A DNA stretch of 64,000 bases from Selaginella moellendorffii (taxonomy: Eukaryota > Plantae > Lycopodiophyta). The stretch is taken from assembly GCF_000143415.4 (NCBI RefSeq), contig NW_003314328.1, positions 1 to 64,000 on the forward strand. Reading direction: 5' to 3'. The notes beneath the pieces are model-generated. The model worked only from the letters and a program-made list of their open reading frames with translations. It did no database searches and was not told the origin of the DNA. Of the stretch, positions 4,260-64,000 are shown in pieces. The position numbers were made by a program, and so were the translations under genes. Positions within the stretch are counted from its first letter, which is position 1. Each line of letters begins with the position of its first letter.

Positions 4260-4630
4260 TATCGGGTGTTGTAGCAAGTTGAATCACAAGTTTATGAGGT
4301 TTAGCATGACATATAATAGGTTGATCCTCCAAAAATTGTATATATGCAATAGCTAAAATGCTTTGTACAAAGGGATTAGGAACAATTGGCACCATCTACA
4401 GATCTATCAATGCCTCCTCCTAATGTTCCTCTAGATCCTAGCCTATCCACAAGAGAACCTTAATACTCTTCCATCATTTTGAGAGGAGGGGATGATATGA
4501 AGTTCAAATGTATGGCTACAATACCATATATTAATATTAGCGTAGTGGCCATCAAATTGATTTCAATATAAGCTAGGGCTTTTAGGTTATATATTTTCTA
4601 TATTCTCTTTCCATATTCCATGCATTCACA
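4260..4630 (+). mobile_element. Degenerate 3' fragment (integrase tail, PPT, 3' LTR) of the same Ty3/gypsy family as 7102-10012
   Basis: Colinear with 9602-10012. Same PPT gagaggaggggatga at 4481-4495, then a diverged LTR ending ccatattccatgcattcaca. Confidence 0.85.
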
Positions 4631-5112
4631 TTTCTAAATGAATTTTGGTTTTGTATGAATTTTTCTCAAGATGAAATCTTTTAGAAGCTAATCTACAACC
4701 AATATTATAAAGCACTAAAAATCACTAATAATCTTAAACATATAATAATATTTTAGTCTGTTTCTGTAAGTGTTATATCTAAAGCTCAATTTAGCATTGA
4801 GCTGATTCAAATATAATAAAAAGATATTGGAATATATTTATGTAGAAATATAGATTAATATTCGAGGATTGATGCACATGATGTAGTTGCATTTCTCATG
4901 CTCAATAGCTTGCTCGTTATAAAGGACATACAAGACTATTGGTAAGTTTGTGTGAGAATTCTTTTACCTTGTTTTCAATCAAGCTCTGGAATTTTTGAGG
5001 GCTGTATACTTGGAAAGGCGGACCTAGGCTTGGGCCATCCAGCAGACTTTCCATAGAATAATACATATACTCAGTAATTCTATCCTATAAAAACCATGTA
5101 ACTGTACCAGAC

Positions 5113-43727: not shown

Positions 43728-44678
43728 ATGTGGCCCTCAAAGTATGCATTGGGGGTTCTTTTGAGTTTCATGGTTGGAATGGATTTGCAACCTGGGAGCG
43801 ATGGCGAGGGAGAGAGCTTGGATGTGGTCATTCTCTCCGGGCAGAGCAACATGGCCGGGAGGGGCGGCGTCCATGCCGTAGGGCAGCGCAGGGAATGGGA
43901 TGGATTTGTTCCACAGGAGAGCTGGGCACCAAATGGCACAATCAAGAGGCTCAATGTGGATCTGGAATGGGAGGATGCCGCCGAGCCATTGCACAGAGAC
44001 ATTGATACTGGTAAGTTCTTGATGCTAAGCGATATCGTTCTAGATCTTAGAGCTCGAGATTGTCTCTCAAACCTTTCCCTTCGATCCAGGCAAAGTTTGT
44101 GGGATTGGGCCTGGCTTGACGTTTGGAGCGGCATTGATCAACCAGCAGAGAAGTAGATTCCTGGGCCTCGTGCCTTGCGCCAAGGGCGCCACTTCCATCA
44201 CGGAATGGACGAAAGGGAGCTTTCTATACGAGCGGATGATCAAGAGGGCGAAGGAAGCCATTCGCAAAGGTGGCGTTTTGAGAGCGCTCTTGTGGTACCA
44301 AGGCGAGACTGATACACTCTCGGAGCACCTCGCGAGGAATTACAAGAGAGCTCTCGAGGCTTTCATTGGCAACGTAAGGTCTGATCTAGGCTGGGATCAG
44401 TTGCCATTCATCCAGGTGAGTGGCTCTCTTGATTTTGTTGTTTGGGAAAGATCTAAGGCTTGGGAAAACAGGTCGGAATCACTGCTCACAATCATCCTCA
44501 CCCCCGTCTTCTTCAGCTGGTTCGTCAGGCCCAGCAACAAATCCACATTGCGAATGTGTTTTACGTGGATGCACACGGCTTGGCTCTGCAGGAAGATGGA
44601 GTTCATCTCACTACTGCCTCGCAGGTTGAGCTCGGCAAAAAACTTGCCCAAAGTTTCATCTCCAATGTCCCCCCATGA
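43728..44678 (+). CDS. SGNH carbohydrate esterase (SASA/CE6 family), 3 exons
   Basis: ILSGQSNMAGRGG, ALLWYQGETD, QEDGVHL. Confidence 0.92.
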
Positions 44679-44995
44679 TTTCCATCCAGATTATTCCCCG
44701 ACCATTCTTCTATATGGAAAAAAAGCTGGCCAAAGGGTAATCCTCTCAACCTAAAGGATTTTCAGCAAAATGGGTGCCATCTTGAACATCTCGAAGGTGT
44801 TCTTAAGCTTTCATTCGAACTGAAGTGAGAACTCGCTGAGCAAGAATTCTATAAGCCGAGGAACCAGGATTCCATCTTCTTTCTCCATCAAATTCTCAAT
44901 CTAAGATCGCAAGATGATCAAATTCTTGGTAATTTTGGTGTTTGGTGCAATGGAAAAGATTCTAAAAGTCTGTTTTTTAAAAAGTTTTAGGGTTC

Positions 44996-46636
44996 ATGAG
45001 CACAACGCTCTTCCCGCCACAGCCGAGTGGCGCCACTCTTCTCCCGGCGAGCAATCCCAATGCCGCGGAGGGCGTGAGGAGATGCGTCTCTTTGCTCAAG
45101 AAATGCCAGCTCCTGGAAGAGTGCGATCAAATCCACGCCCGGATGGCCTCCAGCGGCATCCACCGCGACCGATTCCTCTGCAACAATCTCGTCGAAGCCT
45201 ATGGCCGCTGCGGCGATCTCGACTCCGCCACCGCCGTCTTCCTCACCATCCAGGATCGCAACGTCTTCTCGTGGACGATCATGATCGTGGCCAGCGTCCA
45301 AAACGGCGATGGCGTCCTGGCGCTGCGCCTCCTCCGCGAGATGGACTGCGAGGGCGTCGCCCCGGACGAGATGACCTTTAGCAGCATCTTGGGCGCGCTC
45401 TCGGGCAAGAGAGATCTCCGGCAGGGGCGAGAGATCCACGCGCGGCTGCGCAGCGGCGGCCACGAATCCAATCTCGTCGTCGCCACCGCGCTCATCAACA
45501 TGTACTCGAGCTGCGGCAGCATCGCCGAGGCGCGCGAGGTCTTCTCCAGGACGAACTCCCGCGACGTGGTGTCCATGAGCTCCATGGTGGCGGCGCTGGC
45601 GGGATCCGGGCATGGCGGCGAGGCCATCCTCCTCTTCCGCCGCATGGATCTCGAGGGGATCGCGAGCAACGAGATCACTTTCGTGGCGGCGCTGGTGGCG
45701 TGCTGCGATTGCCCCGGATCCCTGGCGCTGGGAAAGCAAATCCACGAGAGGATCATCGCCGGTGGACTGGGATCCAACGTTTTCCTGGCGAATTCGCTGG
45801 TCACGATGTATGGGAGGAGCGGCGAGGTGGCGGTGGCGGAGGCGGTGTTTAGATCCATCCGCCGCCGCTCGCTCACGTCCTGGAACTCGATGCTCGCGGC
45901 ATATACCCAGAACGGGCATTCCAGCGTGGCACTGGACGTCCACGTCAGGATGGACCACGAGGGCGTGGCGTCGGACGAGTTCACGTTTGTGACGCTGCTG
46001 GACGCGTGCGCCATGGCCGGGACGCTCCAGCTGGGCCGGCAGATCCACGACCGTACAGCCGCGATGGGCCTCATGGCCAACGGGTTCGTGGCCACGGCGC
46101 TGCTGGACATGTACGGCAAGCGGGGCAGCCTGGGCGAGGCGCGGGCGGTGTTCGACCGCCACTGTACGGGAAGCGTCGTGGCGTGGACGGCCATGGTCGC
46201 GTCGTACGCCCAGCACGGGCGGTCCGCGGAGGCGCTGGAGCTGTACGGCTGCATGGCGCTCGAGGGCCTCGCCCCAAACAGCGTCACCTTTGTAAACATC
46301 CTCTCGGCGTGTAGCTACTATGGAATGGTGGATCAGGGATGGGAGTTCTTCGCTTCTATGAGAGGAGATCACGGGATTTGCCCCGAGGCTGTGCATTTTG
46401 GGTGCATGGTTGATGTTTTGTCCAGGGCGGGTCAGCTGGATCGAGCTGAGGAGCTGCTCGAGAGTTTGCCACCTTTCCTGACCGCGCAGCTGAGCCTGTT
46501 GGGCGCTTGCCAGCTGCATGGGGATTTGCAAAGAGGGTGGCGGGTGTCGCACAGAGTGCATGGGGAATGTAGGGAGAAGTACGTGATGCTCACAAACTTG
46601 TCGTCAACTTCATCATATATAAACCATCTTGTTTGA
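44996..46636 (+). CDS. PLS-class PPR protein ending in a truncated E domain
   Basis: Single 546-aa ORF with MYGK/SW repeats and CMVDVLSRAG; no DYW. Confidence 0.92.
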   Translation: MSTTLFPPQPSGATLLPASNPNAAEGVRRCVSLLKKCQLLEECDQIHARMASSGIHRDRFLCNNLVEAYGRCGDLDSATAVFLTIQDRNVFSWTIMIVASVQNGDGVLALRLLREMDCEGVAPDEMTFSSILGALSGKRDLRQGREIHARLRSGGHESNLVVATALINMYSSCGSIAEAREVFSRTNSRDVVSMSSMVAALAGSGHGGEAILLFRRMDLEGIASNEITFVAALVACCDCPGSLALGKQIHERIIAGGLGSNVFLANSLVTMYGRSGEVAVAEAVFRSIRRRSLTSWNSMLAAYTQNGHSSVALDVHVRMDHEGVASDEFTFVTLLDACAMAGTLQLGRQIHDRTAAMGLMANGFVATALLDMYGKRGSLGEARAVFDRHCTGSVVAWTAMVASYAQHGRSAEALELYGCMALEGLAPNSVTFVNILSACSYYGMVDQGWEFFASMRGDHGICPEAVHFGCMVDVLSRAGQLDRAEELLESLPPFLTAQLSLLGACQLHGDLQRGWRVSHRVHGECREKYVMLTNLSSTSSYINHLV

Positions 46637-47029
46637 TTCATGAAAAATGTCAATGGTTGTGAGGCTACAGGAATAGACAAGCTGGACGCGGACAAGATCA
46701 GTATATTTTCCCGTATCTTCTTCAAGCAAGAGCTGCTTCTAGCCCACAACTCTATTCGATAAGCTTAGACCGCTTTATTGGCTTCAGGAGGACCCAAGGG
46801 GTACAACTATGAACTTAAACTCCCTACACTCTCTTGAGCTTGAAGTTGCAGCTCCTCCATTTGAGCTGATGGTAAGATGGTGGGAGTTCATCCTGACTGA
46901 AGTTCATCCCCAAACCTTCTGGCATTCCAGGAGACTGTGAAGGCGAAGGAGCTAAGTTAAATTAAAGTAGGAATCAAATTTAATTAATAAATGAAGTTAA
47001 TGTCGTTAATTGGCACAGAATTAGGTGAT

Positions 47030-47835
47030 GCAATCATAGGCACAACAAGCTTGTATCGTGCCACTCACTATATTTTCTGCTAGTTTTCCGGGCAGTGCCT
47101 TCACTTTTCTGGAGAAAGGATCACACACAAATACTGTCTATATATTCGAACTCCCAAACAAGAAGAAGGAAAGGTTACTCTCAAGAGGCCACTTTGTACC
47201 TCAATATCCATCAAGAAGTCCAATGGCATCTCCATCCATGACAATTCCCCGTTTTTGCTCTGTCGTAGAACACCAAGCTTGAGATTAGTTGGGAACTTCC
47301 ATGTAGAACTCGCCCGGAGTTGCAAATAGCACGAGCTTTCTTAGAATTTCGCGTGCACACGTACACTGCCCATCTCCCGTTTTGATACATGTTTAAAACA
47401 AAAATTCTTTAATTCTTGGTGGGAATCTTCATGTTCTAGCAGGCTTTCTTCTCCACACCGCCCGCGCCATTGCATTGGGGCGCTGATGCTAGGGAATGGA
47501 TCGACAGCAGCTGGAGTAGGGAAGGGAGGGATCTCGAGGGCAATGCGATGGAGGGATCGGTTACGGAGCGCGGGAAGTTGAGGCAACGCCGTTGCAATGG
47601 CGGGCAGTAGCGTAGCGGCAAAGCTGGCTGTCGAGTACGTGCGCTCGTTCTCGCCAATGAGTGTTTTGGCAGGAAGAACAAGCGGATTTCCGTAGCCAAG
47701 AAGAAATGTTATGCTTCGGTCTGATTGCTTCAGTACCGAGAAGGTTGATATACAAAGTAAATTTTTAATACTAACTAAAGATCCATGTGCTGTAACCAAG
47801 GAGCAGCCTAAACACCACCTGGCGCATCTCTAGAA
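47030..47835 (-). pseudogene. Fragmented paralog of the adjacent F-box gene, interrupted by an unrelated ~440-bp segment
   Basis: 47036-47355 aligns by eye to 48415-48820; 47804-47816 aligns to ~48907-48920. Confidence 0.75.
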
Positions 47836-47889
47836 GTACTGCATCGTAGATAAACCATCTTGATTGATCAATGAGAAGTGTTAACAGGA

Positions 47890-48948
47890 TTAAACAAGCT
47901 GGACATGGACAAGTTTACTGCATCCTTTTGTAGCCAAGAGTTCCTTCCATACTCCATGACTCCATTCCATAAGTTTATACCACTTTAATTGCCTCAGTAA
48001 CGCTATATAAACCTTGTCATTCCAAGCCTTGATGCCCCACTCATCTGGATGATCAATTCCAGTCAAGCATGCAATCTCCTTAACCTTGCTCCCCACCACT
48101 TCCCAAAGCCTGAGGACTGCAAGACCAGGACTATACTGAGCAACTAAGAAACCATCCTTCCACTTCTCAAGCTTTACGGATGACGGCCAGTCCAGCTTGA
48201 TTTCTCCAATTGTACACTCCCCGCGGCTAAGCTTTAGCAACTGTGATCCTAATAGCTTCTCATGAGTGCCCTCTGATCGAAGAGCCTTCAACTCAAACCA
48301 TTCACCTCCGTGAGAAATTGCACTGATACAGTACTCTGCCGAGCCATCGATTTCCTTCCATGCATTTGCACTCGAGTCAAACATCCACACAGAGTCCCAT
48401 TTTCCACCATCGACCATAGGCACAATAAGCTTGTATCGTCTTGCATTCTTGTCACTCGCTATGGCCATTTCAAGGAAATACTTATTGTAAGATTCAAAAC
48501 TGGGCAGTGCCTTCACTCGTTTGGAGAAAAAATCACACACAAATACTGTCCATATACTAGCGAAGCGATTCGAACTAGAAAACAAGAAGAAGGCAAGGTT
48601 GCTGTCATGATCGTAGGCCATGGAGCCTCTAGGGTAAAGAGGATGATAACCCTGCGGGAGAGTTTGCCTGCGCACAAAATCCATCAAAAATGTCAATGGC
48701 ATCTCCTTCCATGACAATTCCCCGTCTTTGCTCTGTCTTAGAACAAGATCAAGCCTGATACTAGTTACGAACTTCCATGTCCGGAGTTGCAAAAAGCATA
48801 AGTTTTTTAGAATCTCGCGTGAGCACGCTGCCCAACTTTGACAAACCAATCTCACACTACCAGTCAAAACCTCTACTGGAACCATCTCTAAGATATCCCT
48901 GAGGAACAGCCTAAACACCTCCTCACACATCGCTCTTTTCTTAACCAT
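47890..48948 (-). CDS. F-box protein (lineage-specific family), intronless
   Basis: N-terminal ILEMVPVEVL..VRLVCQSW F-box pattern followed by a beta-rich region. Confidence 0.7.
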   Translation of the reverse strand: MVKKRAMCEEVFRLFLRDILEMVPVEVLTGSVRLVCQSWAACSREILKNLCFLQLRTWKFVTSIRLDLVLRQSKDGELSWKEMPLTFLMDFVRRQTLPQGYHPLYPRGSMAYDHDSNLAFFLFSSSNRFASIWTVFVCDFFSKRVKALPSFESYNKYFLEMAIASDKNARRYKLIVPMVDGGKWDSVWMFDSSANAWKEIDGSAEYCISAISHGGEWFELKALRSEGTHEKLLGSQLLKLSRGECTIGEIKLDWPSSVKLEKWKDGFLVAQYSPGLAVLRLWEVVGSKVKEIACLTGIDHPDEWGIKAWNDKVYIALLRQLKWYKLMEWSHGVWKELLATKGCSKLVHVQLV

Positions 48949-49041
48949 AACCTGATTTGCGGCCACAAGGAATTTTATAACGATCCTTCTCCAAATTTGG
49001 GCCGTTTGATTTAGGGCTGATCGTAGGGCTTAGAGCGAACC

Positions 49042-49064
49042 TAGGGTTTAGGGCTCTAGGGTTT
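49042..49064 (+). promoter_or_regulatory. Telo-boxes upstream of RPS9
   Basis: TAGGGTTT twice, typical of plant ribosomal-protein promoters. Confidence 0.7.
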
Positions 49065-49106
49065 AGATCTTGCCGGCGGGCGAGCGGGAGCGCTGGAGGA
49101 TCGGCG

Positions 49107-49898
<792 letters not shown>

Positions 49899-50029
49899 GC
49901 GAGCGTGCTTCCGTTTCCATTTTCCAGCGGAGATCTTCCTCGCAGCTAAGTCTAGTTATTAAAATCTAATCGTTTGAAGAGAACAATATAACGCGATTTC
50001 TTGCGAGGGCTCTACACTCCACAAAGATC

Positions 50030-51389
50030 ATGAAGGTCGAAGAGATTGAGCGCCTCATGCTTGAGCCGCTATCCCCAACTCCAAGCTGCTTCCTTTCTCT
50101 CTCCCACTTTGATATGAAATACATCTTCCATCCCTATATGCAAGGTGTTGCGTTCTATCCAGGCTCTCGCTCGGACGTGCAGAACGAGAGCTTGATCCAC
50201 CAAGCGAGGCTCTCACTCTCTAAAGTTCTGCTCCACTTCTACCCAGCAGCTGGGCGCCTGGCGCTCTCCAGCGATGGCAACTCGTATGGAATCGACTGCA
50301 ATGCCGCTGGTGTCGAGTGGACAGTGGCAAGAGCCGACTTTCCGCTTGACAATCTCGACTACTCTCAGCCATCGCCCGACTTCTCGGCTCTGATTCGAAG
50401 TGGCAAGTATGGAAGCTCTGCGGCACCACTCGGAAGCCCGCTGCTAAGCATCCAGGTAACCAGTGACCAGTGTTTCTTGAGGATTTCATCCCCTGGATTT
50501 CATCTAGGTGACAAGGTTCTCGTGCGGAGGCATTTCGGTGGCTTGGGCTGCGGACCATGCACTAGCTGATGGAACTGGCCGGGTGCATTTCCTAGTATCT
50601 TGGGCAGAGAGTTGTCTCAAAGGTGAGATTAGCCAAGTTCCTCGCATTGATCGAGATCTCGGGCCCCAGCAGCTGGACTACCCGAGAGCAAGTGATTTCT
50701 CGCCGGTTGCAAGCGGCGGCCATGATCTTCCAAAGTCCGGTAACATAGCGATGAGCGGTCGAATCTTCTGCTTCGAGAGAGCCTACATTGAAAAGCTCAA
50801 GGAGATGGCCGGCGTGGGGTTATCGAGATTCACAGTGCTATGTGCTCACATCTGGATCAACATGTGTGCAGCGAGGGATCTGCCCGATTCCACGAGCACC
50901 ACCAATTCCATGGCAGCCAACTGCAGGAAAAGGCTAGCTCCTCAGCTGCCGGACGACTTCTTTGGGAATGCAGTGCTCCACGCGGTGGCAACGACGACTG
51001 CTGGTGAGCTCCGGAAAGGTGGCCTCCGCCATGCTGCAAGCTTGCTGGAGGATGCAGTTTCGACGAGCTTTGGCATGGAGGGGATCACGAAGAAGCTTAG
51101 CTCCAAGGGCATTGCAGCGGACAAGCTTGGCAGGAATTGTAACATGTTGTGCTCGAGCTCGCCGCGGTTCCGGTACTACGAGATTGATTTGGGATGGGGG
51201 AGACCAGAAGCCGTGCGGCATGTTGGATTGGAGAGGCTTGGATTGGATGGACTTTGCATGTTCAATCCTCATCCAAGATCACCCCAGGGGATTGAAGTCA
51301 CCATAACTTTACCAACATGGACACTGGAGAGGTTGAGACGTCTCCTTGAAGACGCGTGGAGCGCATACTTGTCTTGTGAAACCAAATGA
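50030..51389 (+). CDS. BAHD acyl-CoA acyltransferase, 2 exons
   Basis: FYPAAGRL, conserved Q-intron at IQ|VT, HALADG (HxxxD), FFGNA, DLGWG (DFGWG). Confidence 0.95.
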
Positions 51390-51838
51390 TAAATAAGTGG
51401 AGACATAATAGCTGAAGTCTTATATAAACCATAGAAGGTTAAAAAAGATTTTGATGCTATTCCCTCATGCTTGAACGTGGGTGAGCTCAGTTGCATGGGA
51501 GATGAGTTGGTGCTTCACAGCCGGGGAAGCGATGCTCTAAACATTTACCTTTTGTTAAAAATGTATGTGACGGGGGGGGGGGGGAGAGAAAAAATTATAT
51601 GCTCTATGTTATCAAGTGACCTTTTGGAATCTTGGGCCGACTAATCCAACTTGACATTCAAGCAGTTCTTCCAGCCCCTGGTAGTGTGCCATGGCCTGTC
51701 CACCCAGCTCCTACCGTGCCTGCTCGCCATATCGATGGCAACTTTCCCTTAACGCGTAGGAAACAGCAAGAGCCACGTAGAAAGAGTTAACGAGAGCCCA
51801 TTTCGACTAAAGGTGAGATCAGATCTAGGACTTGTGAA

Positions 51839-53845
51839 ATGGGAAGTGTAGATGTATACTCCATGGACGGAGCTGATAGCCACTTGAAGGAAGTTCGTAG
51901 GATGGTCAAGGGTTTAGACCACGCCAGCATGATAGCGCTCGAGGGCACTGCTCTGACAATCGAGCAAGTCACAGCAGTTGCTAGGCGCGCTGACCATATC
52001 CATGTTGAGCTTGCTGTCCAGAGTGCCAAATCTCGAGTGGACAAATGCGCAGAGTGGGTCATGGAGAGTGTCGCGAAAGGAGTCGATACCTATGCAATCT
52101 CCACTGGCTTCGGAGCTCACTGCAATCGAAGGACGGCAAATTTCTCGGGCCTGCAGCAGGAGCTAATCCGCTACTTGAATGCTGGCATCATGGGCACCAA
52201 TCCAAGCAATGTCTTGCCTGTTCATGTCACGCGCGCCACCATGCTGGTGAGGGCCAACTGTTTGGTGCAAGGCTACTCGGGAACACGTTGGGAGATCCTG
52301 GATGCCATTGTCAAGCTCATCAATGCTCAAGTTACGCCCAAAGTTCCTCTCCGAGGATCAATCACTGCTTCGGGGGATCTCATGCCGCTGGCCTACATTG
52401 CAGCCATTCTAACCGGAAGACCAGATTCAGTAGCTTTCACCAGAGATGGAAGCATCACCTCTGCCCAAGAAGCCCTCAAGCTTGCGGGAGTTGAAGCTCC
52501 ATTCGAACTGCGGCCCAAGGAAGGAATAGCGCTTGTGAATGGGACTTCGGCGGGTGCAGCTCTGGGATCTCTCGTTTGCTTCGATGCCAACGTTCTCGTC
52601 GTCTTTGCTGAAGTCTTGACTGCCATGTTTTGCGAAGTCATCCACGCACGCAGCGAGTTTGTAGATCCGCTCATCCACAAGCTGAAGCACCACCCTGGGC
52701 AGATCGAAGCTGCGGCAATCATGAACCACGTCCTTCAAGACAGCGCTTTCATGGCGTCCGCAGCTAGACTGAACCAGGTTGACAACCTCAAAAAGTTCAG
52801 GCAAGACCGCTACGCAATACGAAGCTCTCCGCAATGGCTAGGCCCCCAGATCGAAGTCATCCGCCATGCAACTCGCTCCATCGAGCGAGAGATCAACTCG
52901 GTCAACGACAATCCCGTGATCGACGTTGCGCGTGACAAGGCGCTTCACGGTGCAAACTTCCAAGGCACTCCCATCGGTGTCGCGATGGACAACGTGAGAA
53001 TCGCCCTGGCCGCAATCGGGAAGCTCGTCTTTGCTCAATTCTCGGAGCTGGTCAATGCCAGCTTCAACAACGGGCTGCCTTCCAACCTGTCAGCTGGTCC
53101 AGACTCGTCCCTTGATTACGGATTCCATTGCGCAGAGATTGCCATGGCTGCCTACATGTCCGAGCTTGCATACTTGGCGAATCCCGTCACCACCCACGTT
53201 CAGACGGCCGAGCACCACAATCAGGCAGTCAACTCTCTCGGACTCGTCTCCGCGAGGAAATCCGAAGAGGCCGCTGAGATTCTCAAGATGATGCTGTCCA
53301 CGTACTTGTTGGGCATCTGCCAGGCGATCGATCTGAGGCATCTGGAGGTGGCATTGCAAGGAGCTGTGATGAAAGTTCTCTCCTCGATCGGGGATGAGTT
53401 CTTCCCGGCTGCCTGTGTTGAGAGCATGCTGCTCGAAGTGGAGAAGCAGTATACGTTCAGCTTCATTGACGATGCAATGGACGGCTCCTCCACACTACTA
53501 AACAAGCTGAGGCAAGTCTTTCTCGCCAATCCCACCACGCAGGGCTGCTCGGTCAGGAAATTTGGCGAGTTTAAAGATCGGTTGAAACCAAAACTGGAGG
53601 AGGCGATTGCCACAACCAGGAAAGAGTCCCTGGACAAACCTGCGACTCATATCATAGAGAAGTGCGTCTCATACCCGCTGTACCAGTTTGTTCGTCATGA
53701 ACTGGGCACGGAGATGCTCACAGGGGGTGGCCTGGAAGGAAGATCTCCCAAGCAGGACCTGGACAAAATATACGATGCATTCTGCAATGGGAGCCTGATG
53801 GAGCCGCTCTTCAAGTGTCTTGAAGGGTTTGAGCAGCATGCCTGA
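51839..53845 (+). CDS. MIO-dependent aromatic amino-acid ammonia-lyase/aminomutase (PAL family), divergent, intronless
   Basis: ITASGDL (MIO), catalytic Tyr loop DTYAISTGFGA, QDRYAIRSSPQW, NSVNDNP, NFQG; several pocket residues differ from PAL. Confidence 0.95.
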   Translation: MGSVDVYSMDGADSHLKEVRRMVKGLDHASMIALEGTALTIEQVTAVARRADHIHVELAVQSAKSRVDKCAEWVMESVAKGVDTYAISTGFGAHCNRRTANFSGLQQELIRYLNAGIMGTNPSNVLPVHVTRATMLVRANCLVQGYSGTRWEILDAIVKLINAQVTPKVPLRGSITASGDLMPLAYIAAILTGRPDSVAFTRDGSITSAQEALKLAGVEAPFELRPKEGIALVNGTSAGAALGSLVCFDANVLVVFAEVLTAMFCEVIHARSEFVDPLIHKLKHHPGQIEAAAIMNHVLQDSAFMASAARLNQVDNLKKFRQDRYAIRSSPQWLGPQIEVIRHATRSIEREINSVNDNPVIDVARDKALHGANFQGTPIGVAMDNVRIALAAIGKLVFAQFSELVNASFNNGLPSNLSAGPDSSLDYGFHCAEIAMAAYMSELAYLANPVTTHVQTAEHHNQAVNSLGLVSARKSEEAAEILKMMLSTYLLGICQAIDLRHLEVALQGAVMKVLSSIGDEFFPAACVESMLLEVEKQYTFSFIDDAMDGSSTLLNKLRQVFLANPTTQGCSVRKFGEFKDRLKPKLEEAIATTRKESLDKPATHIIEKCVSYPLYQFVRHELGTEMLTGGGLEGRSPKQDLDKIYDAFCNGSLMEPLFKCLEGFEQHA

Positions 53846-53978
53846 GGGAGTTAATCAAATAAAGGACTGCATAGCAAAATCTTTTTGTGCGTTTGATACA
53901 CGTTTTTGTCACTGTTTCTTTTTCTTTCAACCTTTAATAAGACGACACTTCCAGCGCAATATGGCATATGGCACAACT

Positions 53979-54780
53979 TTAAAGTTCAAGTTCGGCTTGG
54001 AGAATTCCTGCTGGCGGCCACCACTTTGCGAACCGATGAAGATTCATTCGAAGCCGACATTCCCTATGATGACCTTGCTGCAAAGTCTCGGCCTGGAAGA
54101 GGAAGTTTTAAAATCGATGTCGAACCAAACCTTCCAAGAGAGATTTAGATTTCTTACTTGTTTTTCCCAGTTTGTGAAGACACTAGAGATCAAAAGGAAG
54201 GTTATCGGTTGTGTGCCTGTTCCACAAAGAATTCCAATCACTAGTCCCTGTTCGATTTGAGAGGAACACAAAACTTTGACGATCAGGAGTGACAAAACAC
54301 GATCATTCACACCTTTCCATTGAGGCCGAAATGGAACGCGAGACTGTAAGCGATTGGTACACCAACAATGTAGTAAGCTCCCAGATTTGCAGCAGCAGCA
54401 GTAGCTTGCCATCCACAACCCCTCGCAACACCGAAAGTTCTCACGATCGATCATAAAATCCCATGAAAGTCATCTCCGAAGTTCTTGGAGCGATTATGAG
54501 CTTACCCGAGATGGATCGTTGGATATCATCCATGAAGGAAATGAGGGCTGTGATCGGTCCAAGCTTCGCCACATTGTTGATAACTTCTGGTTCGTTGCTA
54601 TAAACTCTTCCCAGAAAGTGGCGAGCCAAGAACAAGAGAATCGCCATTGTCGTAGCATCAAGGAGGGCGAGACCAAGTGTGACAAAGAAGGCAAACCGCG
54701 CATTGGAAACTTGGCCAGCTCCAAGCTCATTGGAAATTCGCGTACTATGAAAGACCAAAACTAGAGGAATGTCCATACCT
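53979..54780 (-). pseudogene. MATE (DTX) transporter, C-terminal half only
   Basis: STRISNELGAG, VYSNEPEV, GVARGCGWQ..NLGAYYIVG, TNWEKQ with introns; no room for N-terminal exons before the peroxidase. Confidence 0.85.
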
Positions 54781-55051
54781 AAGAAAACAAAGGAAAAGGT
54801 TAAGCATTAATTTAAAAGGGTGTGAAGAAATTTCACATTACTTCCAGCAAATAATTTTTACAAAAAATAATTTCACTTTGTCTACTCGATGAGCAACCTT
54901 GTGGTACAAAACCCTGAGAATCATTGCCAGAACTGCTAAAGCTAGATAATAATAAGATCCACTCATCAGAATAGTCCACCTCAAGAATCGCACTTATATT
55001 ATAATGAACTAAATTGCATGACAGTAACTTGAGCTGCGGAGTCTAACCAAG

Positions 55052-56186
55052 ATGAGATTTCTGGCTGTTTTGATTGCAATCGCAGTGATTTTTCCAAGCT
55101 CTTCCCACCAATTCTGGCCCGGTTTCTACGACTCGAGCTGCCCAGGCCTCGCATCCATCGTCGCGCAAGTTTCACTGAGGAGATTCCAGCAGCTGACCAA
55201 TCACCCAGCACAAGTTCTTCGGCTCTTCTTCCACGACTGCTTCGTAGAGGTTTGTGTTGATCGGGTAGAGCGCGTTTGCCAATCCCACAAGCAATGCAGG
55301 GCTGCGATGGATCGATCCTCATCGGCCAAACTCCGCAGTCCTCGGTCGAGAGAGACTCCGTGGCAAACCGGGACTTAGTCCAGGATGCGTTTGATACGAT
55401 CGATCTCGCGAAGCAAGCCGTGGAAGCCCAGTGCCCGGGTGTGGTCTCGTGTGCTGATATACTTGCGATGGTCACTCGAGATATGTTGATCCTGGCAAGT
55501 TTCCAGCATACTTGTATGTCCTTGTTTTGATCTTTATAAACTCTTCCAGGCGGGAGGGCCGGGCTGGAATCTGGCGCTCGGACGGAGGGATGGAACAGTG
55601 TCACGCGCGGATAGCGCGCTTAGAGAAATCCCATCGCCAAGGTCTGGTCTGGACGAGCTGCTCAAGAACTTCCACAGCAAAGGACTCAACTTACTTGATC
55701 TCGTCACGCTCTCTGGTATGGATATATAGCTGCTAGCTCGAAAAGCCTCGATGATCTTCTTTTTTTTCAGGCTCTCACACGCTCGGGGTCTCCCACTGCT
55801 CGCAATTCAGCCAGAGGCTCTATGGAGTCAACACCTCTCTGGACGGCACTGACCCTTCTCTCGATCCATCCTTCGCGAAGGAGCTCAAGAAGGACTGCCC
55901 GCCAGGAGCCCCTGTGACGGCCATCGAGTTCTTCGACAAGGCCGCGCCTTTCACCTTCGACAACCATTACTTCAAGAACCTGGAAGCCGGCAGATCGCTG
56001 CTCACATCCGACGAGAGCCTCCTCGCCTCCTTCCCCTCCAGGGAAATCGTCAGGCTATTCGCTCGAGATCCACCGCTGTTCTTCTTTTCCTTCGCGGCAT
56101 CCATGGACAAGCTCTCCAGACTGGGCGTCAAGACCGGCGGGGCGGGCGAGATCCGGCGATCGTGTAACCGATTCAATGCGCAGTAG
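55052..56186 (+). CDS. Class III secretory peroxidase, 4 exons
   Basis: Signal peptide, FYDSSCP, LRLFFHDCFVEGCDGS, VSCADIL, GSHTLG, FDNHYF. Confidence 0.96.
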
Positions 56187-56233
56187 CTAGAAACTCTCAA
56201 AAACCCTAAAAGTAAGAACCCTAATATTTGTGC

Positions 56234-56800
56234 TCAAACTTCTTTAAAGCCCTTGCGAAAGTCCGCGAAATCCTCCCCTTCTTTTTCTTCTCCTTCCATC
56301 TCCTCGCCCCTTCTTCCTCGCCCGAATGGCTGCGGCGATGGAGCTCTCCGGTGGAATCCCTCCTCGTCGCTGCCCCTCTCTCTCTCGCCGTGCTTGAAGA
56401 TCCCAAAGTTCCCAAACAGCTCGTTTGCGATCTCTTCCGCCGCGCGCATGAATCCCTCGATCTCGCCCGATAGATGCTCCTCCAGCGCCTCAGAGAATCG
56501 TGACAATGGATTGCCGCTGCTAGAGCCAAGGCTGTGCTGGTGATCGCCCTCCTCCTCGCTTGGAACGTCCTCCTCCGTCTCCTCTCTCTTGGACTCCACG
56601 ACCTCGGGCTTCCTAGATCGATGATGATCGAAATTGGAAGAAAGAAATAAAGATTACCTCCCAGGGCAGTGGCGGAGGAGCTGCTCGAGCCTCTCACACC
56701 TCAAGATCGGCTTCCTCGTCTCTGGATCCTCCACGGTATTGCAAGTCTTGCGGCGAATCCTGGTATAGCTGCAGCCATCGGCATCGATCTTGCCCTCCAT
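56234..56800 (-). CDS. Small protein resembling Mal d 1-/Fra a 1-associated proteins, 2 exons
   Basis: MEGKIDADGCSYTRIRRKTC...RCERLEQLLRHCPGR|PEVVESKREETEEDV; C-terminal DFRKGFKEV. Confidence 0.65.
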
Positions 56801-56878
56801 CCTCGCTCCAAAATCCCTGGCGTTTCGAGATTAGGTCTCTTGGCCAAAGCCCACGAAATTAGGGTTCTTGAGCGAGCT

Positions 56879-58004
56879 ATGGCTGCGCGCCCCAAGGAGC
56901 CCTCCACGGCGCCCCAGGCCGAGCACTGGTATCCTCTACAGCTTGGATCCAGCCTCAAGGATCCGTCCAAGCGCTTCTACTTCCTGCGCTGTAAGTGCGA
57001 TCTCGATCTCGATCGATATTTCCAGCTGAGATTTCTTTCTTTGTCTGTGGCGCTTAGATGAATTCAAGCCTGCTTCGATCGATACGAGCCGGCCAGGGTC
57101 GCTCCACAAAGACAAGGGCGCCGAGGTGACTGTGGAGCTCTCAAACAATCAGCCAGGGAAGCCCAAGGTCGCGTTTCAAGGTATTAGCGAGGACTGCAAA
57201 GACTCCGATGCTATCTTGTTCTTTGATGGAAGGACTTTCAGATTAGAAAGGCTCCACAGGGCAGTGAAGAGCCTCAGGCATCTCCGGTTGCCTGGCGAGT
57301 CTGCGGCCTCCTCCTCCTCGGCTCTCGCAGCTCCGGACAATCGATCGCCTTTGCATCTGAATGGAACGAGCAGTGCTAGCGCCGGAGACGATGCCAACGT
57401 CTATAGAGGCCCTCGGGTATGTGATCCTCGAACTTTCTTCCTCGTTTCTATGCTCTTGGGCTTGTTCTTAGTTTCGTGCTCTTGGTTTTTCTTCCAGGAA
57501 CACATCGAAGAGATTGTCATTGGTGGCCAGCCCGAGGCCGCAGCGAGCAACAAGAAAAACGAGAAGAAAGCTGCTGGGAGCAAAGGAAAATCGAAAGCCG
57601 CAGCGCCATCTCCTCCGCCGAAGCGATCACACGCGGATGAGTTCTCGCCGGTGGACATGGAAGACGATGCTGCTGCGGACGCGAAGAAGCTCAAGCCGAG
57701 CGGTGGTGTTCTAGCCAACAACGTCGAGCACATCGACGTGAGCAACAACATGGAGGAGGGCATGGCGGAGCACGAGAGTGACTACGAGCTCGAGGACGTG
57801 GATGTGAGCGAGGACGAGGACGGGCAGCTCAACTCCAAGCCGCCGCCGCTCTCGATCGAGAGCCATCCTGCTGTGCCGGATCATCCAGAGTCCAAGGCAA
57901 GCTCCAGCGAGAGTGGAAGCAGCAGCAGCTCCGAGGGTGGAAGCGGAAGCAGCAGTGGCAGCGATGGCAGTGACGATGAATCGGCGAGCTTGCTAGAGAT
58001 TTGA
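56879..58004 (+). CDS. ELL-associated factor (EAF) family protein, 3 exons
   Basis: WYPLQLGSS..FYFLRY-EFKPASID..FDGRTFRLERL; acidic/Ser-rich tail. Confidence 0.88.
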
Positions 58005-58227
58005 TCATCATCCGGGCTCCAAAGAAGAACTCTCTCAAGGGAGAACTAAGAAGAAGTGGCACGAACAAAGGTATCTATAGAAACGCACTATGACCATGAG
58101 CGTTATCTCCAAATTTCTATCTTCCATCTCTGAGACCTACACTTGAATAAAAGGTGAAATATGTTGCCATGCGTTTGAGGGTTTTGCCGCGCATTTCCTT
58201 TGTTCTTCGTCTCGGTCTCTCGCTCAA

Positions 58228-58541
58228 ATGCGCCAAGCGATGGAACGCGTCCGAGGCGCAATCCCGCCGGCGCCATGGCAGCACAGGTAGGCGCCTTCTT
58301 GCTTGCGCTGCGATCGATCGGCGGCGAGAATCCTCGTTCTTGCGCTTGTTTCCTCCGAAATATCGATTCCTGAGGCGCTTTTCGTGCGTGTTCTCGCAGA
58401 TCGCCACCGCGCGGCGGCAACGTCGACATCGAGTCGGGCATCGAGATCGCGGAAGAGCCCGGCGAAGAGGAGCCGGAAGTGTCCTTCTGGACGAAGCTGC
58501 TGCATTCCATCAAGAAGATCATCGGCGGCACCAGGAGCTGA
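58228..58541 (+). CDS. Putative small 2-exon protein (~66 aa), unknown function
   Basis: GT-AG intron ~58287-58399 joins MRQAMERVRGAIPPAPWQHR to SPPRGGNVDIESG...FWTKLLHSIKKIIGGTRS*. Confidence 0.35.
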
Positions 58542-58682
58542 GAGACAGCGTGATTCTCTCGCTCGATCCCTCGTTTCTTTCTTCCTAGAGTAGAAATCTC
58601 GGTTCTTCCTCTCTCTCTTTCTTGAGTGTACAGGGCCATTTTTTTTTTGGTTAATGCCTAGTGCCGCTTAAACCCTAAGGCT

Positions 58683-60021
58683 ATGGCGGATCACGGAGAG
58701 CGCAATGCCGTGGCAGCGCCATTCTCCTCCTTGGCTGTTCGATCCTCGACGGAATGGGTAGCCGATCACGCGTCTCATGTTTCCATCGATCCCGCCGGTG
58801 AGAATTTTTCACCCAGAACTTTTTCTTTCTTTCTTTCCTTCTTTTGTATGATCTTCCGTGGTGATTGTGCAGGCATTGCAAAGGTGGTGGATAGTCTGCA
58901 CGGAGATCTCCCAGCTGTTTCATGGGACTTCGAAGGCATCCATTACTTCGATGGTGGTCCTCTCACGGCACAGTACTTGTTGGTCCTTGACACTCTCAAC
59001 TTCTGCTTTTGGCCAGGTTTGATCATTCCTTTCTTTTGTTGCTTGACACTGTCGTTTTTTGTAGATGGCGACCTTCACTACGATCACTTGGCGGCGGGGC
59101 TCAAGCGCGCTTTGCAAAGAGATAACAGCATTTTCGATGCTAAGAGTCTCAAGTCTTTCACAGGTAAGCGCTTGTTTTTTAGCTTTTGCGGTCAAGTTTT
59201 TTTGCTGATTAGTTAGCTGCGTGTGTCAAACGCAGGCATTCAGTTGCGTGAATTACTTGAATGGCCACGCCCACTTCCTCTAGAGGACGAACGTGCCCGT
59301 TTATTAGCAGAGGTTAGATTCAATTTGTGCACTGACACGCACACAATTTTTTTTTCTCTCTTTTGTTTTTTCTAGGTGGGGACTGAACTAGAGAGAAGCT
59401 TCGATGGACAAGCAGTAAACTTAATCCTTGCTGCAAGCGGCTCGGCTGTCGCTCTTGTGGAACTGGTTGCTATGCATTTTCCGGGTAATCAGTTGTTCTT
59501 GGATATGTATGAGCTGTTCTTTTGATCCTTGTACACGTCCAGGCTTCAGGGACCATTCCGTGTACAAGGGGCATCAAGTCTTCCTTTACAAGAGAGCTCA
59601 GATATTTGTTGCTGATCTTTGGGGAGCTTTCAAGGGCCAAGGCTTGGGAGCATTCGCGGACATTGCTGCTATAACGATGTTTGCGGACTACATTGTTCCT
59701 GCTGTTCTTCGGCAGTGGGGAATCCTCAACTACAGCCCGAAACTTGCTCGAATAGTAGACAATCTTGAGGAGCTGTCGTCCGGCACGGAGGAAGAGATTG
59801 AAATTCGCGCGTGTACAATCGCAGCAGTGGAGATGCTCCGAGAGAAACTAAGATCGAAGGCTGGGAAAGAGGTATGAGTCGATTGGATATCACACCAAAC
59901 TGTTCGCGACATTGAAATCTTCCAGGTCCTGAGCGTGCAAGTGGATTGGTGGCTGTGGTCGTCGGGAATAGGAGCAAACAAAAACCTTCGATTTCATCGG
60001 ACCCGAACACTCTACTATTGA
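58683..60021 (+). CDS. Queuosine salvage protein (DUF2419 / QNG1-like), multi-exon
   Basis: LDTLNFCFW, GFRD, FLYKRAQIFVADLW, TMFADYIVP, EIRAC, HRTRTLYY*. Confidence 0.93.
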
Positions 60022-60823
60022 CAAGGTAGATAGATCTACATAGATCTAAATATACTGATCCTTTTTTCTTCTTTGCAGAGAATGCACAAACTAGTCTTGG
60101 ACCAGTCCGATCTCCGCTACTCTCTCCAATGCCGAGGGAGCGCCTACCATCCCGCACGACCCCCAGTTCTCTAGACTCTCATATCCATCTGCAAACAGCT
60201 CGAGGCAACGATCAGTAGCGAGCAGCATAGCCATCACGCGCTCCACGAGCACACTAAACAGCCAGGAACTCTTTGCAAGCGCTAGTGGATTCTCCATTCA
60301 GCCGGCTCCGAATTCTCCGGACAGTCTCGCCTTTTGTAGTGGGCTGCAAGAGAGGTTAAGGCGTACAAGTATGTGGCTTGGTGACAAGGACGGCATTAAT
60401 AGCCTTGTGCTAGCGGGGCACCCTTCGTGGCGTCACACCTTGGATTTGTTCCAGCCGCTGGACCGCTGAGCCGATGGGACGATGCCAGTGGCGGATACAA
60501 TTCGGAGGGCATTGGATTTGAACGCTCGAGGTATCTTTGTCCCCAATAGATGTTTTCTCTGACCAACTTGGATTTGTTTATTCCAGAAAACAGTGGTCAG
60601 TGCATCGATCTGGCGAGCATGAATGATCCACAAAGGTGTGTGAAGATAATGTTTTCGATTTTGGGCACTGCAGCACGCAAACGGCATCATTGTTTTGGCA
60701 ACGCTAGAACGTCAGCATGATCCTCGAAGAACAATGACTTCCACGAAACGACGAGGTGAAACTTCGAGTAAAGTTTAAGTTGGTAGCCTAGTCGCTCGCG
60801 AATAAATTCGCTATGACTCTAAC

Positions 60824-61700
60824 TTCGTTTTCTCGTGACGATTTTTCCAGGCCATTGCCACGAGAAAAGCTTGTCTGGCAAGATCGTCAAATGAGAAGCC
60901 TACATGATCTTCGAGAATCTGGGCGATGGGAACGTTGGCCAGTGGGTCGTGCGCATCAAGTCATGCACAAGCCTCTCTCGAGCGGCGCAGCTCCACGCAC
61001 AGTCGCACAAGAGCCTCGAATTCGACAATTACCTCTCCAAGCAGATGTATGGCAAATGCGGCAGCCTCCAAAACGCTCGCAGCGTCTTTGACACCATCCA
61101 GATCTTCTCGTGGAACTTGCTGCTATCGGTGCATGCCCAGAACGGGGAATTGGAGGAGGCCAGGCGGTCCCGTGCAAAGCCTCGGTGTCATGGAACATGA
61201 CGGCGTGAGAAGCTGGAAGAAGCGAGGGCTGTTTTTGATGGCATGGATTTGGAGGAAAGGGATCCAGTGTCGTGGAATGTGATGTATGCCCATAGTGGGC
61301 ATTGAGGAGGTATTTGATGGAATGCCACTTGGGCTCCTGGAATGCGCTGTTTTGAGGAAGCGAAGGATGTGTTTGATGGTATGCCCGCGAGGGACTTAAA
61401 CTTCCTGGAGCACCATGCTGGCGACTGTTGCCACCCTTGGGCATCTTCAAGAAGTCAAGGAGTTTTTTTGGTTTGATTCCCGAGTGGAATACCGTCGCAC
61501 GTTTTGACGAGATTCCATGCAGCAGCATATGCCCAATGCGGGCATCTTGGCCTTGTAGCTCGTTGACTCCATGCCACGAGCGAAACTCCGTGTCATGCAC
61601 GACGATCCTCGGCGGCTGACCCTACCAGCGGAGCAAGCATCTACAATGACTATGTCGTGTGCTGGAATGACATGTCTATGCTTGAAACGTAACCTGTTTT
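60824..61700 (+). pseudogene. Deleted/frameshifted duplicate of the PPR gene at 63047
   Basis: Colinear with 62980-63960 with many internal deletions. Confidence 0.9.
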
Positions 61701-61829
61701 CTATCTAGCAGTTCGCTAGATTAGGTCTGCTATCCGCTGCATGGCACCAGTGACATAGAGTGAGCTCCCTGGTTAGTAGAAACTTGGAAAATGGCAAGAA
61801 AACGACTGGGTGGCATAACCATTATTGCT

Positions 61830-62894
61830 TCTAGAGAATATCCGTGCGTCACACCCTAGATGCCACTTGGGACAGCAACCAAGTCGTCCACTGGAACCAT
61901 CTCTAAGATATCCCCGAGGCGAAATTCTAAGAAGCTCATGCTTTTGGCAAGTCCAATCCCTAATCTCAAGCTTGATCTTGTTCTACAAAGTCGCAATGGT
62001 GGGAAGTTGTCTTGGAAGGAAATACCATTGGACTTTTTGATGGATTTGTGTCCACAAAAGCTCGCATTGCTCCAGGCCTCAGGACCATGCCAAGCAAAGC
62101 TTTCGAAAGTGCAGCACAAGGAGCATGCTCTTCAAAGAGATCGGCCAATTGTAAGAGACAATGGCCTGGATGGAGCCACAGGACCTTGATGAGTATCTCC
62201 AAAACATCCTCGCCAATCTTCCAGGACATCCGGTCCTCGTCCTCATCATCCATTTCCTCGTCGTCCATTTCCCCGTCGTCTTGGATCGAGCTTTCCTTGG
62301 CAGCACTGGCAAACTGTCCAGGAGGGTTATATTCCTCTTTACTATAAAGGCTCCGACGATCTTGAGAGCAACCTTGCCTTCTTCTTCTTTGCGAGTTGGA
62401 AGGACTTCACTACTATATGGACAGTATTTGTGTGTGATCTTTTCTCCAGACGAGTGTTCAAAGGCACTACCCAATTTTGAATCTTACCAAAAATATTCCT
62501 TTGGAATGGCCATAGTGAGTGCAAGACGATACAAGCTTGTTGTGCCTATATTCGATATCGGAGCTTGGAACTCTGTGTTGATGTAGTGCGAATGGATGGG
62601 AGGAAATCGATGGCTCGGCGGAGTACTGTGTGGTCAAGGTGAATGGTATGGGTTGAAGGCTCTTCGATCAGACGAGGAGCGATTAGCATCACAGTTGCTA
62701 AAGGTTAGCGTGCAATTGGAGATATCAAGCTTGTCTCGCCACCATTCGAAGTATTCAAGCTTGAGAAGTGGCAGAATGGTTTCTTAGGTGCCCGGTATAA
62801 TACTGGGCCTGTGAAGTGGTGGGGAGCAATGCCAAGGAGATTGCATGCTTGACTGGAACTGATGATCAAGAAGATTGGGGACTGGACTTTGGAA
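61830..62894 (+). pseudogene. F-box pseudogene, inverted paralog of 47890-48948, with internal insert
   Basis: LDLVLQSRNGGKLSWKEIPLDFLMD vs LDLVLRQSKDGELSWKEMPLTFLMD; KALPNFESY..RRYKLVVP; stops and frameshifts. Confidence 0.85.
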
Positions 62895-63046
62895 TGATGA
62901 AAGTTGACAACAAGTTTGTGAGCATCACGTCCTCCTCCCTACATTCCCCATGCACTCTGTGCGGCACCCGCCACGAGATTTAACTTGGTTTTCTCATTTT
63001 CCAGGCCACTGCCAAGAAAAGCTAGATCGTCAAATGAGAAGCATAC

Positions 63047-64000
63047 ATGATCTACGAGAAACTGGGCGATGGCAACGTTGGCCAGTGGGTCGAGCGCATC
63101 AAGTCATGCACAAGCCTTTCTCGAGCGACGCAGCTCCACGCACAGCTCCTCCACTCGCACAAGAGTCTCGAATTCGACACTTACCTCTCCAACTTGCTCG
63201 TCCAGATGTATGGCAAATGCGGCAGCCTCCAAAACGCTCGCGACGTCTTTGACGGCATCCGCCACAAAGATGTCTTCTCGTGGAACTTGCTGCTCTCGGC
63301 GCATGCCCAGAACGGGGAATTGGAGGACGCCAGGCGGTTGTTTGAGGCCATCCCGTGCAAAGACTCGGTGTCATGGAACACGATTTTGACTGCGCTCGTC
63401 CAGGGCGAGAGGGTGGACGAAGCGAGGGCTATCTTTGATGACATGGATTTGGAGGACAGGGATCCGGTGTCGTGGAATGTGATGCTTACTGGATATGCCC
63501 AAGCTGGGCATTTGGAGAAAGCACAGGAGGTTTTTGATGGGATGCCGGTTTGGAACTTGAGCTCCTGGAATGCGCTGTTGTCGGGATACTCGCAAGCGGA
63601 TTGTTTTGAGGAAGCCAAGGATGTGTTTGATCGCATGCCCGCGAAAGATTTAACTTCGTGGAGTGCCATGCTTGCTACAGTTGCTACCTTGGGGCATATG
63701 TCTGAAGCTAAGGAGTTTTTTGGGTTAATCCCCGAGTGGAATACCATTTCATGCACGGCTATGCTGTCGTGCTTTGCGAAACACGGGCATTTAGAACAAG
63801 CTAAAAGTGTTTTTGACAAGATGCCTGTGAGGGATTTTATTTCGTGGAACGCCATGCTATCTGCATATACCCAATGCGAGCATCTTGATTCTGCCTTGGA
63901 GCTCTTTAACGCCATGCCCGAGCGAAACTCCGTGTCGTGCACGACAATCCTCGGCGGCTGCGCTCACAGCAATCGAGCTAGTGAAGCGGAGCGCATCTTT
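63047..64000 (+). CDS. PPR protein (short-repeat-rich PLS type), runs off the window end
   Basis: Open frame MIYEKLGDG..MYGKCGSL..SWN with ~31-aa repeats; possible upstream exon (acceptor near 63004). Confidence 0.88.
   Translation, partial: MIYEKLGDGNVGQWVERIKSCTSLSRATQLHAQLLHSHKSLEFDTYLSNLLVQMYGKCGSLQNARDVFDGIRHKDVFSWNLLLSAHAQNGELEDARRLFEAIPCKDSVSWNTILTALVQGERVDEARAIFDDMDLEDRDPVSWNVMLTGYAQAGHLEKAQEVFDGMPVWNLSSWNALLSGYSQADCFEEAKDVFDRMPAKDLTSWSAMLATVATLGHMSEAKEFFGLIPEWNTISCTAMLSCFAKHGHLEQAKSVFDKMPVRDFISWNAMLSAYTQCEHLDSALELFNAMPERNSVSCTTILGGCAHSNRASEAERIF

Follow-up and report, generated by a model that had tools for sequence, protein, structure and literature searches.

A four-family gene neighbourhood in Selaginella moellendorffii is probably not a working biosynthetic cluster, and holds an expressed, diverged PAL-family gene

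Introduction

Do four specialised-metabolism gene families packed into 6.2 kb of the Selaginella moellendorffii genome serve one pathway, or did they come to lie side by side by chance? The question is raised by positions 50030 to 56186 of the stretch analysed here, which comprises positions 1 to 64,000 of contig NW_003314328.1 (64 kb, hereafter the window). A sequence-only reading of this DNA had proposed that a BAHD acyltransferase gene, a gene for an atypical methylideneimidazolone (MIO) enzyme of the phenylalanine ammonia-lyase (PAL) family, a MATE transporter gene and a class III peroxidase gene form a candidate biosynthetic gene cluster. This term is used here for at least three non-homologous pathway genes that are adjacent, co-regulated and directed to one product.

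Our answer is that there is likely no working four-gene cluster at this locus. It would instead be a compact-genome neighbourhood of a diverged HCT-like BAHD and a PAL-family MIO enzyme (referred to as PAL-like), accompanied by a silent peroxidase and the remnant of a dead MATE gene, in which PAL-like is expressed and appears to be substrate-shifted. The four families most likely lie next to each other by chance, the genome being compact. The proposed pathway cluster did not survive the observations that the MATE segment is dead, that the peroxidase gene is covered by antisense RNA only and that the BAHD gene is frameshifted on the sister haplotype.

Results and Discussion

Sister haplotype and RNA data

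A protein of S. moellendorffii annotated as phenylalanine ammonia-lyase on scaffold GL377644.1 is 98% identical to the 668-aa open reading frame (ORF) at 51839-53845, and the GL377644.1 region is colinear with window positions 44189-64000 at 95-99% identity (blastn). Because of this colinearity and identity, the region is taken to be the sister haplotype in an assembly known to comprise two. The RNA evidence consisted of four RNA-seq runs (X1, X5, X21 and X22) from three studies, of which X21 and X22 were stranded, and reads were mapped onto a 6000-nt stretch of the locus. Family searches of spliced genes were done exon by exon. All four families were recovered by Pfam at the places where they had been proposed; the BAHD, PAL-like and peroxidase genes are intact in the window haplotype, and the MATE segment amounted to a relic of three exons.

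The MATE relic

The features of the MATE segment are as follows.

53965..54795, no strand assigned: haplotype-specific stretch of ~830 bp holding the MATE relic (blastn against the sister haplotype, which lacks the stretch)
54157..54746, minus strand: MATE relic with three internal exons (54504-54746, 54312-54429 and 54157-54246) and two introns (RNA joints and loose ends)

A Pfam MatE match was obtained at 54441-54776 on the minus strand. The first exon of the relic aligns with residues 297-375 of a plant MATE of 455 aa, and the relic thus starts at about residue 297. A search for exons of the N-terminal half gave none, and a further upstream exon at 54838-54993 is unsupported. The segment falls short of a complete MATE coding region, which would comprise two MatE domains, 12 transmembrane segments and about 450-500 aa. 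The truncation, already conceded when the cluster was proposed, was borne out, and the remaining part is also haplotype-specific and locally silent.

All RNA reads over the MATE exons differ from the window at positions 54208, 54403, 54518 and 54550. These reads also continue past both outer exon borders into sequence that is nowhere in the 64-kb window, and one contig of the MATE paralogue's mRNA measures 1516 nt. Because of the fixed differences and of the exons that lie outside the window, the reads were assigned to an intact paralogue elsewhere, with the local copy being silent. The MATE piece is a relic and no transporter gene.

The junction of the ~830-bp difference, at positions 12166-12188 of the sister-haplotype region, shows a short microhomology. 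Capture of the MATE piece by a transposon was considered and rejected, with neither terminal inverted repeats nor a target-site duplication being present. A deletion in the other haplotype fits the difference better than transposon capture, the direction of the event being unproven. Further haplotype-specific stretches occur upstream, at 2712-3837 and 4512-5715 in the numbering of the GL377644.1 region, and have no counterpart in the window.

These results bear directly on the explanation that BAHD, the MIO enzyme, a MATE exporter and the peroxidase act in one pathway. Such a pathway would account for the presence of all four families in 6.2 kb between housekeeping-type genes. For the MATE member the explanation is largely refuted by a three-exon relic that is absent from the other haplotype and shows no local transcription, and it is further opposed by the antisense, unspliced RNA of the peroxidase and by the BAHD gene broken on one haplotype, both described below. 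We therefore regard the full pathway as highly improbable.

The peroxidase gene and its antisense RNA

The peroxidase end of the locus holds the following features.

55052..56186, plus strand: class III peroxidase, predicted exons 55052-55249, 55300-55494, 55550-55715 and 55771-56186, 324 codons plus stop (Pfam peroxidase, in three pieces)
54991..56099, minus strand: antisense unspliced RNA over the peroxidase (stranded runs X21 and X22; the right limit is the edge of the RNA-mapped stretch)
56234..56800, minus strand: convergent gene for a small acidic protein with no Pfam family (gene of 173 aa annotated at the corresponding position on the sister haplotype)

The predicted peroxidase carries the hallmarks of its family (PF00141), namely the distal FHDC motif at residue 60, GCD at 67, HT at 189, a proximal His context, eight cysteines and one terminal stop. 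It is intact in both haplotypes and constrained, with an allelic dN/dS of 0.19. In this homology-based model, which was built without sense transcripts, intron 2 (55495-55549) needs GC..AG borders with the donor GCAAGT.

The orientation of the stranded runs was read from the other genes of the locus: for BAHD and PAL-like the first mate lies on the minus strand, and for the minus-strand MATE paralogue on the plus strand. Over the peroxidase the first mate lies on the plus strand, at a depth of 3-11x, as against 0-0.9x for the opposite orientation (X21 and X22). Additionally, the X1 contig over the peroxidase is colinear with genomic DNA, and neither splice joints nor sense peroxidase mRNA were detected in the sampled runs. 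Because the read orientation matches that of minus-strand genes, joints are absent and the contig is colinear, the peroxidase RNA is interpreted as antisense and unspliced. The convergent gene at 56234-56800 and the peroxidase gene have their stop codons 47 bp apart, and the antisense RNA is probably a 3' extension of this convergent gene by ~1.2 kb.

The BAHD gene and its two alleles

The BAHD gene and the neighbouring PAL-like gene occupy the left part of the locus.

50030..50455, plus strand: BAHD exon 1, 142 codons (Pfam Transferase in the frame 50030-50569, profile positions 1-143; GT donor at 50456)
50456..50507, plus strand: BAHD intron of 52 nt, GT..AG (splice joint 50453 to 50506 in the four RNA runs X21, X22, X1 and X5)
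50508..51389, plus strand: BAHD exon 2, 293 codons plus stop (Pfam Transferase 139-427; HXXXD and DLGWG)
51839..53845, plus strand: intronless PAL-family (MIO) gene, 668 aa (Pfam Lyase_aromatic, PF00221, E 5e-146)

The two BAHD exons encode 435 codons and are transcribed and spliced in all four RNA runs. The window allele has the features expected of its family (PF02458), with HXXXD present as HALAD and DLGWG replacing DFGWG. The sister-haplotype allele departs from the family because an extra T (+1) after window position 50542, just ahead of HXXXD, shifts its frame. RNA carries the extra T as well, in the contig of X1 and in two of four reads of X22, and since the insertion recurs in RNA, the frameshift is attributed to a real transcribed null allele and not to an assembly error.

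The two alleles differ by 17 non-synonymous and seven synonymous changes, which gives a dN/dS of ~0.75 that is indistinguishable from neutral (p 0.48). BAHD seems to be little constrained, if at all, and its copy on the other haplotype is a segregating pseudogene; for these reasons an obligatory partnership of BAHD and PAL-like is unlikely.

Amongst solved structures, the best relatives of BAHD are hydroxycinnamoyl transferases (E 1e-25 or weaker). A word-index search with exon 2 returned only its own allele. In an exhaustive search, the nearest relatives besides the allele were 36-40% identical and no BAHD orthologue was found in another species. These nearest relatives are S. moellendorffii 'BAHD clade I' and HCT-like proteins. 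Their genes belong to tandem BAHD arrays located on other scaffolds, where no PAL gene lies close by.

The PAL-like gene

The RNA contig of PAL-like covers 51682-53868 with zero differences from the window, the stranded reads are sense, and transcription was detected in all four RNA runs. The encoded protein and parsley PAL (PDB 1W27) align over their full lengths (E 6.5e-225). Besides its own allele, no protein exceeds 58% identity to PAL-like, and the canonical S. moellendorffii PAL is 56% identical. No orthologue of PAL-like was found in another species by protein homology search.

The active site of the enzyme is assembled from three subunits, and the geometry of Tyr112 and His430 is therefore beyond the reach of a monomer model. 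The residues that define the PAL family are all kept in PAL-like: the triad ASG177-179 together with Y85, N234, Q322, Y325, R328, N358, F374, E458, N461 and Q462. At the same time 50 of 261 near-invariant columns (19%) are substituted, identically in both alleles. The proposal of an atypical MIO enzyme was thus upheld by both the low identity to other PALs and the number of changed columns, and the enzyme is more unusual than a sequence-only reading could reveal.

In a tree with 31 land-plant PALs, PAL-like and its allele share a branch of ~2 changes per column, and the other PALs lie far closer together. The tree was midpoint-rooted without an outgroup, had this long branch and contained no grass tyrosine aminomutase (TAM) sequence. 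In this tree PAL-like falls outside all sampled land-plant PALs as a separate, very long branch, and not in a grass TAM clade, a tentative placement given that branch length and the rooting.

The reading frame of PAL-like is open in both haplotypes. Its allelic dN/dS is 0.43 (14 non-synonymous and 10 synonymous differences; p 0.05), and the neighbouring PPR gene gave 0.46. Long-term constraint on PAL-like is indicated because a 2-kb frame has stayed open in both haplotypes despite ~45% protein divergence.

These data also have to be considered in relation to the explanation that PAL-like is a redundant, fast-drifting PAL copy, either still specific for phenylalanine or on its way to loss. The very long branch and the 19% of changed near-invariant columns are in line with drift, as are the dN/dS that is only borderline below neutral and the orthologue search that came back empty. 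Expression is low, at 1.5-4x compared with 30-80x for the paralogous MATE. The two diagnostic pocket residues discussed in the next section are reported to be insufficient for TAM activity (PMC13586772), which is compatible with a phenylalanine-specific copy. The open 2-kb frame speaks against drift, as do the retention of all catalytic and MIO residues, the location of changes at known specificity positions and the transcription in all runs. Altogether, a drifting copy is possible, though we doubt it, and an expressed, substrate-shifted PAL-like is the explanation followed below.

The aryl pocket of PAL-like

Relative to Petroselinum crispum PAL1 (PcPAL), the following pocket positions are changed in PAL-like.

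PcPAL 137: Phe to Tyr112
PcPAL 456: Lys to His430
PcPAL 457: Gly to Cys431
PcPAL 256: Leu to Ile230
PcPAL 485: Gln to His459
PcPAL 489: Asp to Ala463

Of 119 other PALs compared, 111 have Phe at position 137, three have Val, five have a gap and none has Tyr; position 456 is Lys in 119 of 119. A canonical phenylalanine-specific PAL has a hydrophobic residue at 137 and Lys at 456, and PAL-like has Tyr112 and His430 instead. Position 137 is the established specificity switch of PcPAL and faces the para substituents of the substrate, according to a paper on PcPAL engineering (PMC9226071). As a separate observation, the canonical S. moellendorffii PAL has Val-Leu and not Phe-Leu at the 137/138 selectivity switch, Val being rare at this position.

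In the grass tyrosine aminomutases OsTAM1 and ZmTAM1, as described in a 2026 Plant J highlight (PMC13586772), Tyr occupies the switch (Y125/Y128) and Asn replaces 'the corresponding lysine' (N446/N449). The same text reports that reverting either residue reduces or abolishes beta-tyrosine formation, and that the pair alone is insufficient, since TAM activity can be absent from grass proteins that carry both (PMC13586772). The equivalence of Y125/Y128 with PcPAL 137 follows from the phrase 'the histidine found in PTALs' in the highlight. N446 would correspond to PcPAL K456 because the two TAM positions are spaced by 321 residues, compared with 318-323 in the PALs examined, and because K456 is the only invariant lysine in the region. 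PAL-like shares the first of the two TAM features, Tyr112 being aligned with PcPAL Phe137, and departs from the second, with His430 and not Asn in place of the conserved Lys.

Judged from these residues, PAL-like has most likely retained MIO chemistry, with an aromatic amino acid as its substrate. With the MIO triad and catalytic residues kept and the para end of the aryl pocket altered (Phe137 to Tyr, Lys456 to His), the enzyme would act on an aromatic amino acid with its preference moved. We infer that this preference has shifted from phenylalanine to tyrosine or another para-polar arylalanine, with tyrosine as the simplest candidate. Lyase activity, in which ammonia is released, and aminomutase activity, in which it is shifted, cannot be discriminated for PAL-like by sequence. 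A more specific proposal would be that this lycophyte MIO enzyme moved from phenylalanine to tyrosine or a para-polar arylalanine independently of grass PTALs and TAMs, through a Tyr/His pocket, and is possibly an aminomutase feeding the adjacent BAHD; taken as a whole, we consider this combination quite improbable. No literature on a Selaginella aminomutase, or on a cluster at this locus, was found.

Linkage, co-expression and chance

BAHD and PAL-like are co-oriented and, as had been described, separated by about 450 bp, the exact distance from the BAHD stop at 51389 to the PAL-like ATG at 51839 being 449 bp. The spacer between the end of the BAHD transcript (at least 51420) and the start of the PAL-like transcript (51682 or earlier) contains a run of ~13 G at 51573-51585.

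This arrangement raises the explanation that the two genes form a young module, in which the MIO enzyme makes a tyrosine-derived acid or beta-amino acid and the HCT-like BAHD forms a lineage-specific conjugate from that product, which would serve as an acceptor or be activated with CoA elsewhere beforehand. The genes are co-oriented neighbours on both haplotypes, both are orphan-like and diverged, both are transcribed in four of four runs, and the window BAHD allele is intact in HXXXD and DLGWG and correctly spliced. Several results oppose such a module. The sister-haplotype BAHD is frameshifted yet transcribed, and its allelic dN/dS is close to the neutral expectation, as given above. The depth ratio of BAHD to PAL-like varied from ~1:1 to 6:1 among the four runs. 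No CoA ligase lies nearby, and paralogous loci show no pairing of BAHD and PAL. We consider the two-gene module unlikely.

Chance adjacency, the explanation preferred here, is in agreement with the tests of linkage and co-expression. Synteny cannot support a link between BAHD and PAL-like because no orthologue of either was found in another species. Linkage at relatives or paralogous loci, on which a conserved cluster would depend, was not upheld: the gene order is shared with the sister haplotype only, the BAHD arrays and the canonical PAL are unlinked, and the canonical S. moellendorffii PAL locus stands alone. Co-expression was not upheld for the proposed members: BAHD and PAL-like were both detected in the four runs, at the varying ratio given above, sense RNA was absent for the peroxidase, and the MATE reads are paralogous.

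Assuming ~22,000 genes at one per ~5 kb, with ~8% in specialised-metabolism families, runs of three neighbouring specialised-metabolism genes are expected by chance at ~10 per haplotype, a rough estimate that was not computed on the genome. In this explanation BAHD and PAL-like would be lineage-specific, strongly diverged members of large phenylpropanoid-type families that came to be adjacent by chance.

A number of points weigh against this explanation and should be considered in concert. BAHD and PAL-like are co-oriented at 449 bp, linked on both haplotypes, both diverged and detected in every run, and such linkage, divergence and joint detection are what would be expected of a young two-gene module. 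The BAHD frameshift might have arisen only recently, in one of the two haplotypes of a single cultivated clone. Co-regulation of BAHD and PAL-like cannot be tested with as few as four runs, and contig depth measures it poorly. Tissues or treatments other than those sampled may express the peroxidase. The chance estimate rests on the assumed family sizes. Finally, the correspondence of OsTAM1 N446 to PcPAL K456 draws on the spacing and on the wording 'the corresponding lysine' in the highlight (PMC13586772).

Genomic surroundings

The boundaries of the locus agree with their earlier description as housekeeping-type. A ribosomal S4-type gene lies upstream, the small acidic protein gene, EAF and Q_salvage lie downstream, and PPR genes are found further out. 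On the sister haplotype the annotated order is PPR, ribosomal protein S4-type, BAHD (called at 212 aa), PAL-like (668 aa), peroxidase (331 aa), the 173-aa minus-strand protein, EAF and Q_salvage. Pfam searches of the large ORFs of the 64-kb window identified PPR, PPR-DYW, NIF phosphatase, DUF4408 and retroelement integrase. These ORFs yielded neither a CoA ligase nor a P450 nor any further pathway gene, in accordance with the earlier caveat that a CoA ligase is missing. Elsewhere in the window, the ORF of a retroelement integrase (Integrase_H2C2 and rve) lies at 8621-9616, and the gene of a PPR-E-DYW editing factor, divided between two neighbouring ORFs, lies at 32975-35126.

Amongst other RNA-seq data, runs X8 and X13, which are labelled as two other organisms, share sampled words with the 6.2-kb stretch, 35% of them being present in X8 and 17% in X13. 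These runs may represent close relatives or mislabelled samples.

Implications

As a gene cluster the locus has little significance, since the evidence favours ordinary adjacency in a genome dense with genes. It does illustrate cleanly how an apparent cluster can be dismantled by comparing haplotypes and by using stranded RNA reads. PAL-like is a good biochemical target, as it alters the two pocket positions of TAM in its own way with the catalytic residues kept. According to the highlight, two plant tyrosine aminomutases were recently uncovered behind 'PAL' annotations (PMC13586772). If the substrate shift of PAL-like is true, tyrosine-directed MIO chemistry may have arisen a further time in land plants, and the gene would bear on the question of which residues suffice for it.

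Comparison with known systems

The pairing of a PAL-family MIO enzyme with a BAHD in one organism is shared with Taxus, and the structures of the Taxus aminomutase PAM match PAL-like at E 1e-181. Unlike ordinary PALs, Taxus PAM scores lower against PAL-like (608 vs 751 bits). It has Cys at the switch position, unlike PAL-like, in which this residue is Tyr. The analogy with the Taxus PAM and BAHD is limited further in that nothing at the Selaginella locus points to a beta-amino acid, to a CoA ligase or to a joint product.

As with HCT-type BAHDs, including S. moellendorffii HCT (PDB 6DD2), and with 'BAHD clade I', the window BAHD has HXXXD and finds its nearest relatives in these groups. Unlike them it is only 36-40% identical, carries DLGWG and not DFGWG, is dispersed and not part of a tandem array, and has one frameshifted allele.

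PAL-like resembles PcPAL (1W27) in domain order, in the Ala-Ser-Gly MIO triad and in keeping Tyr110, Asn260, Gln348, Tyr351, Arg354, Asn384, Phe400, Glu484, Asn487 and Gln488 (PcPAL numbering). It differs in being ~55-58% identical to any PAL and in its length of 668 aa, compared with ~716, with shorter N-terminal and shielding-domain stretches.

OsTAM1 and ZmTAM1 are PAL-family enzymes that make (R)-beta-tyrosine. Unlike these grass enzymes, PAL-like has His and not Asn at the second position, belongs to a lycophyte, lies on its own long branch and has a putative activity. PAL-like has in common with them the switch Tyr, the loss of the invariant Lys, an intact MIO motif and the database label 'PAL'.

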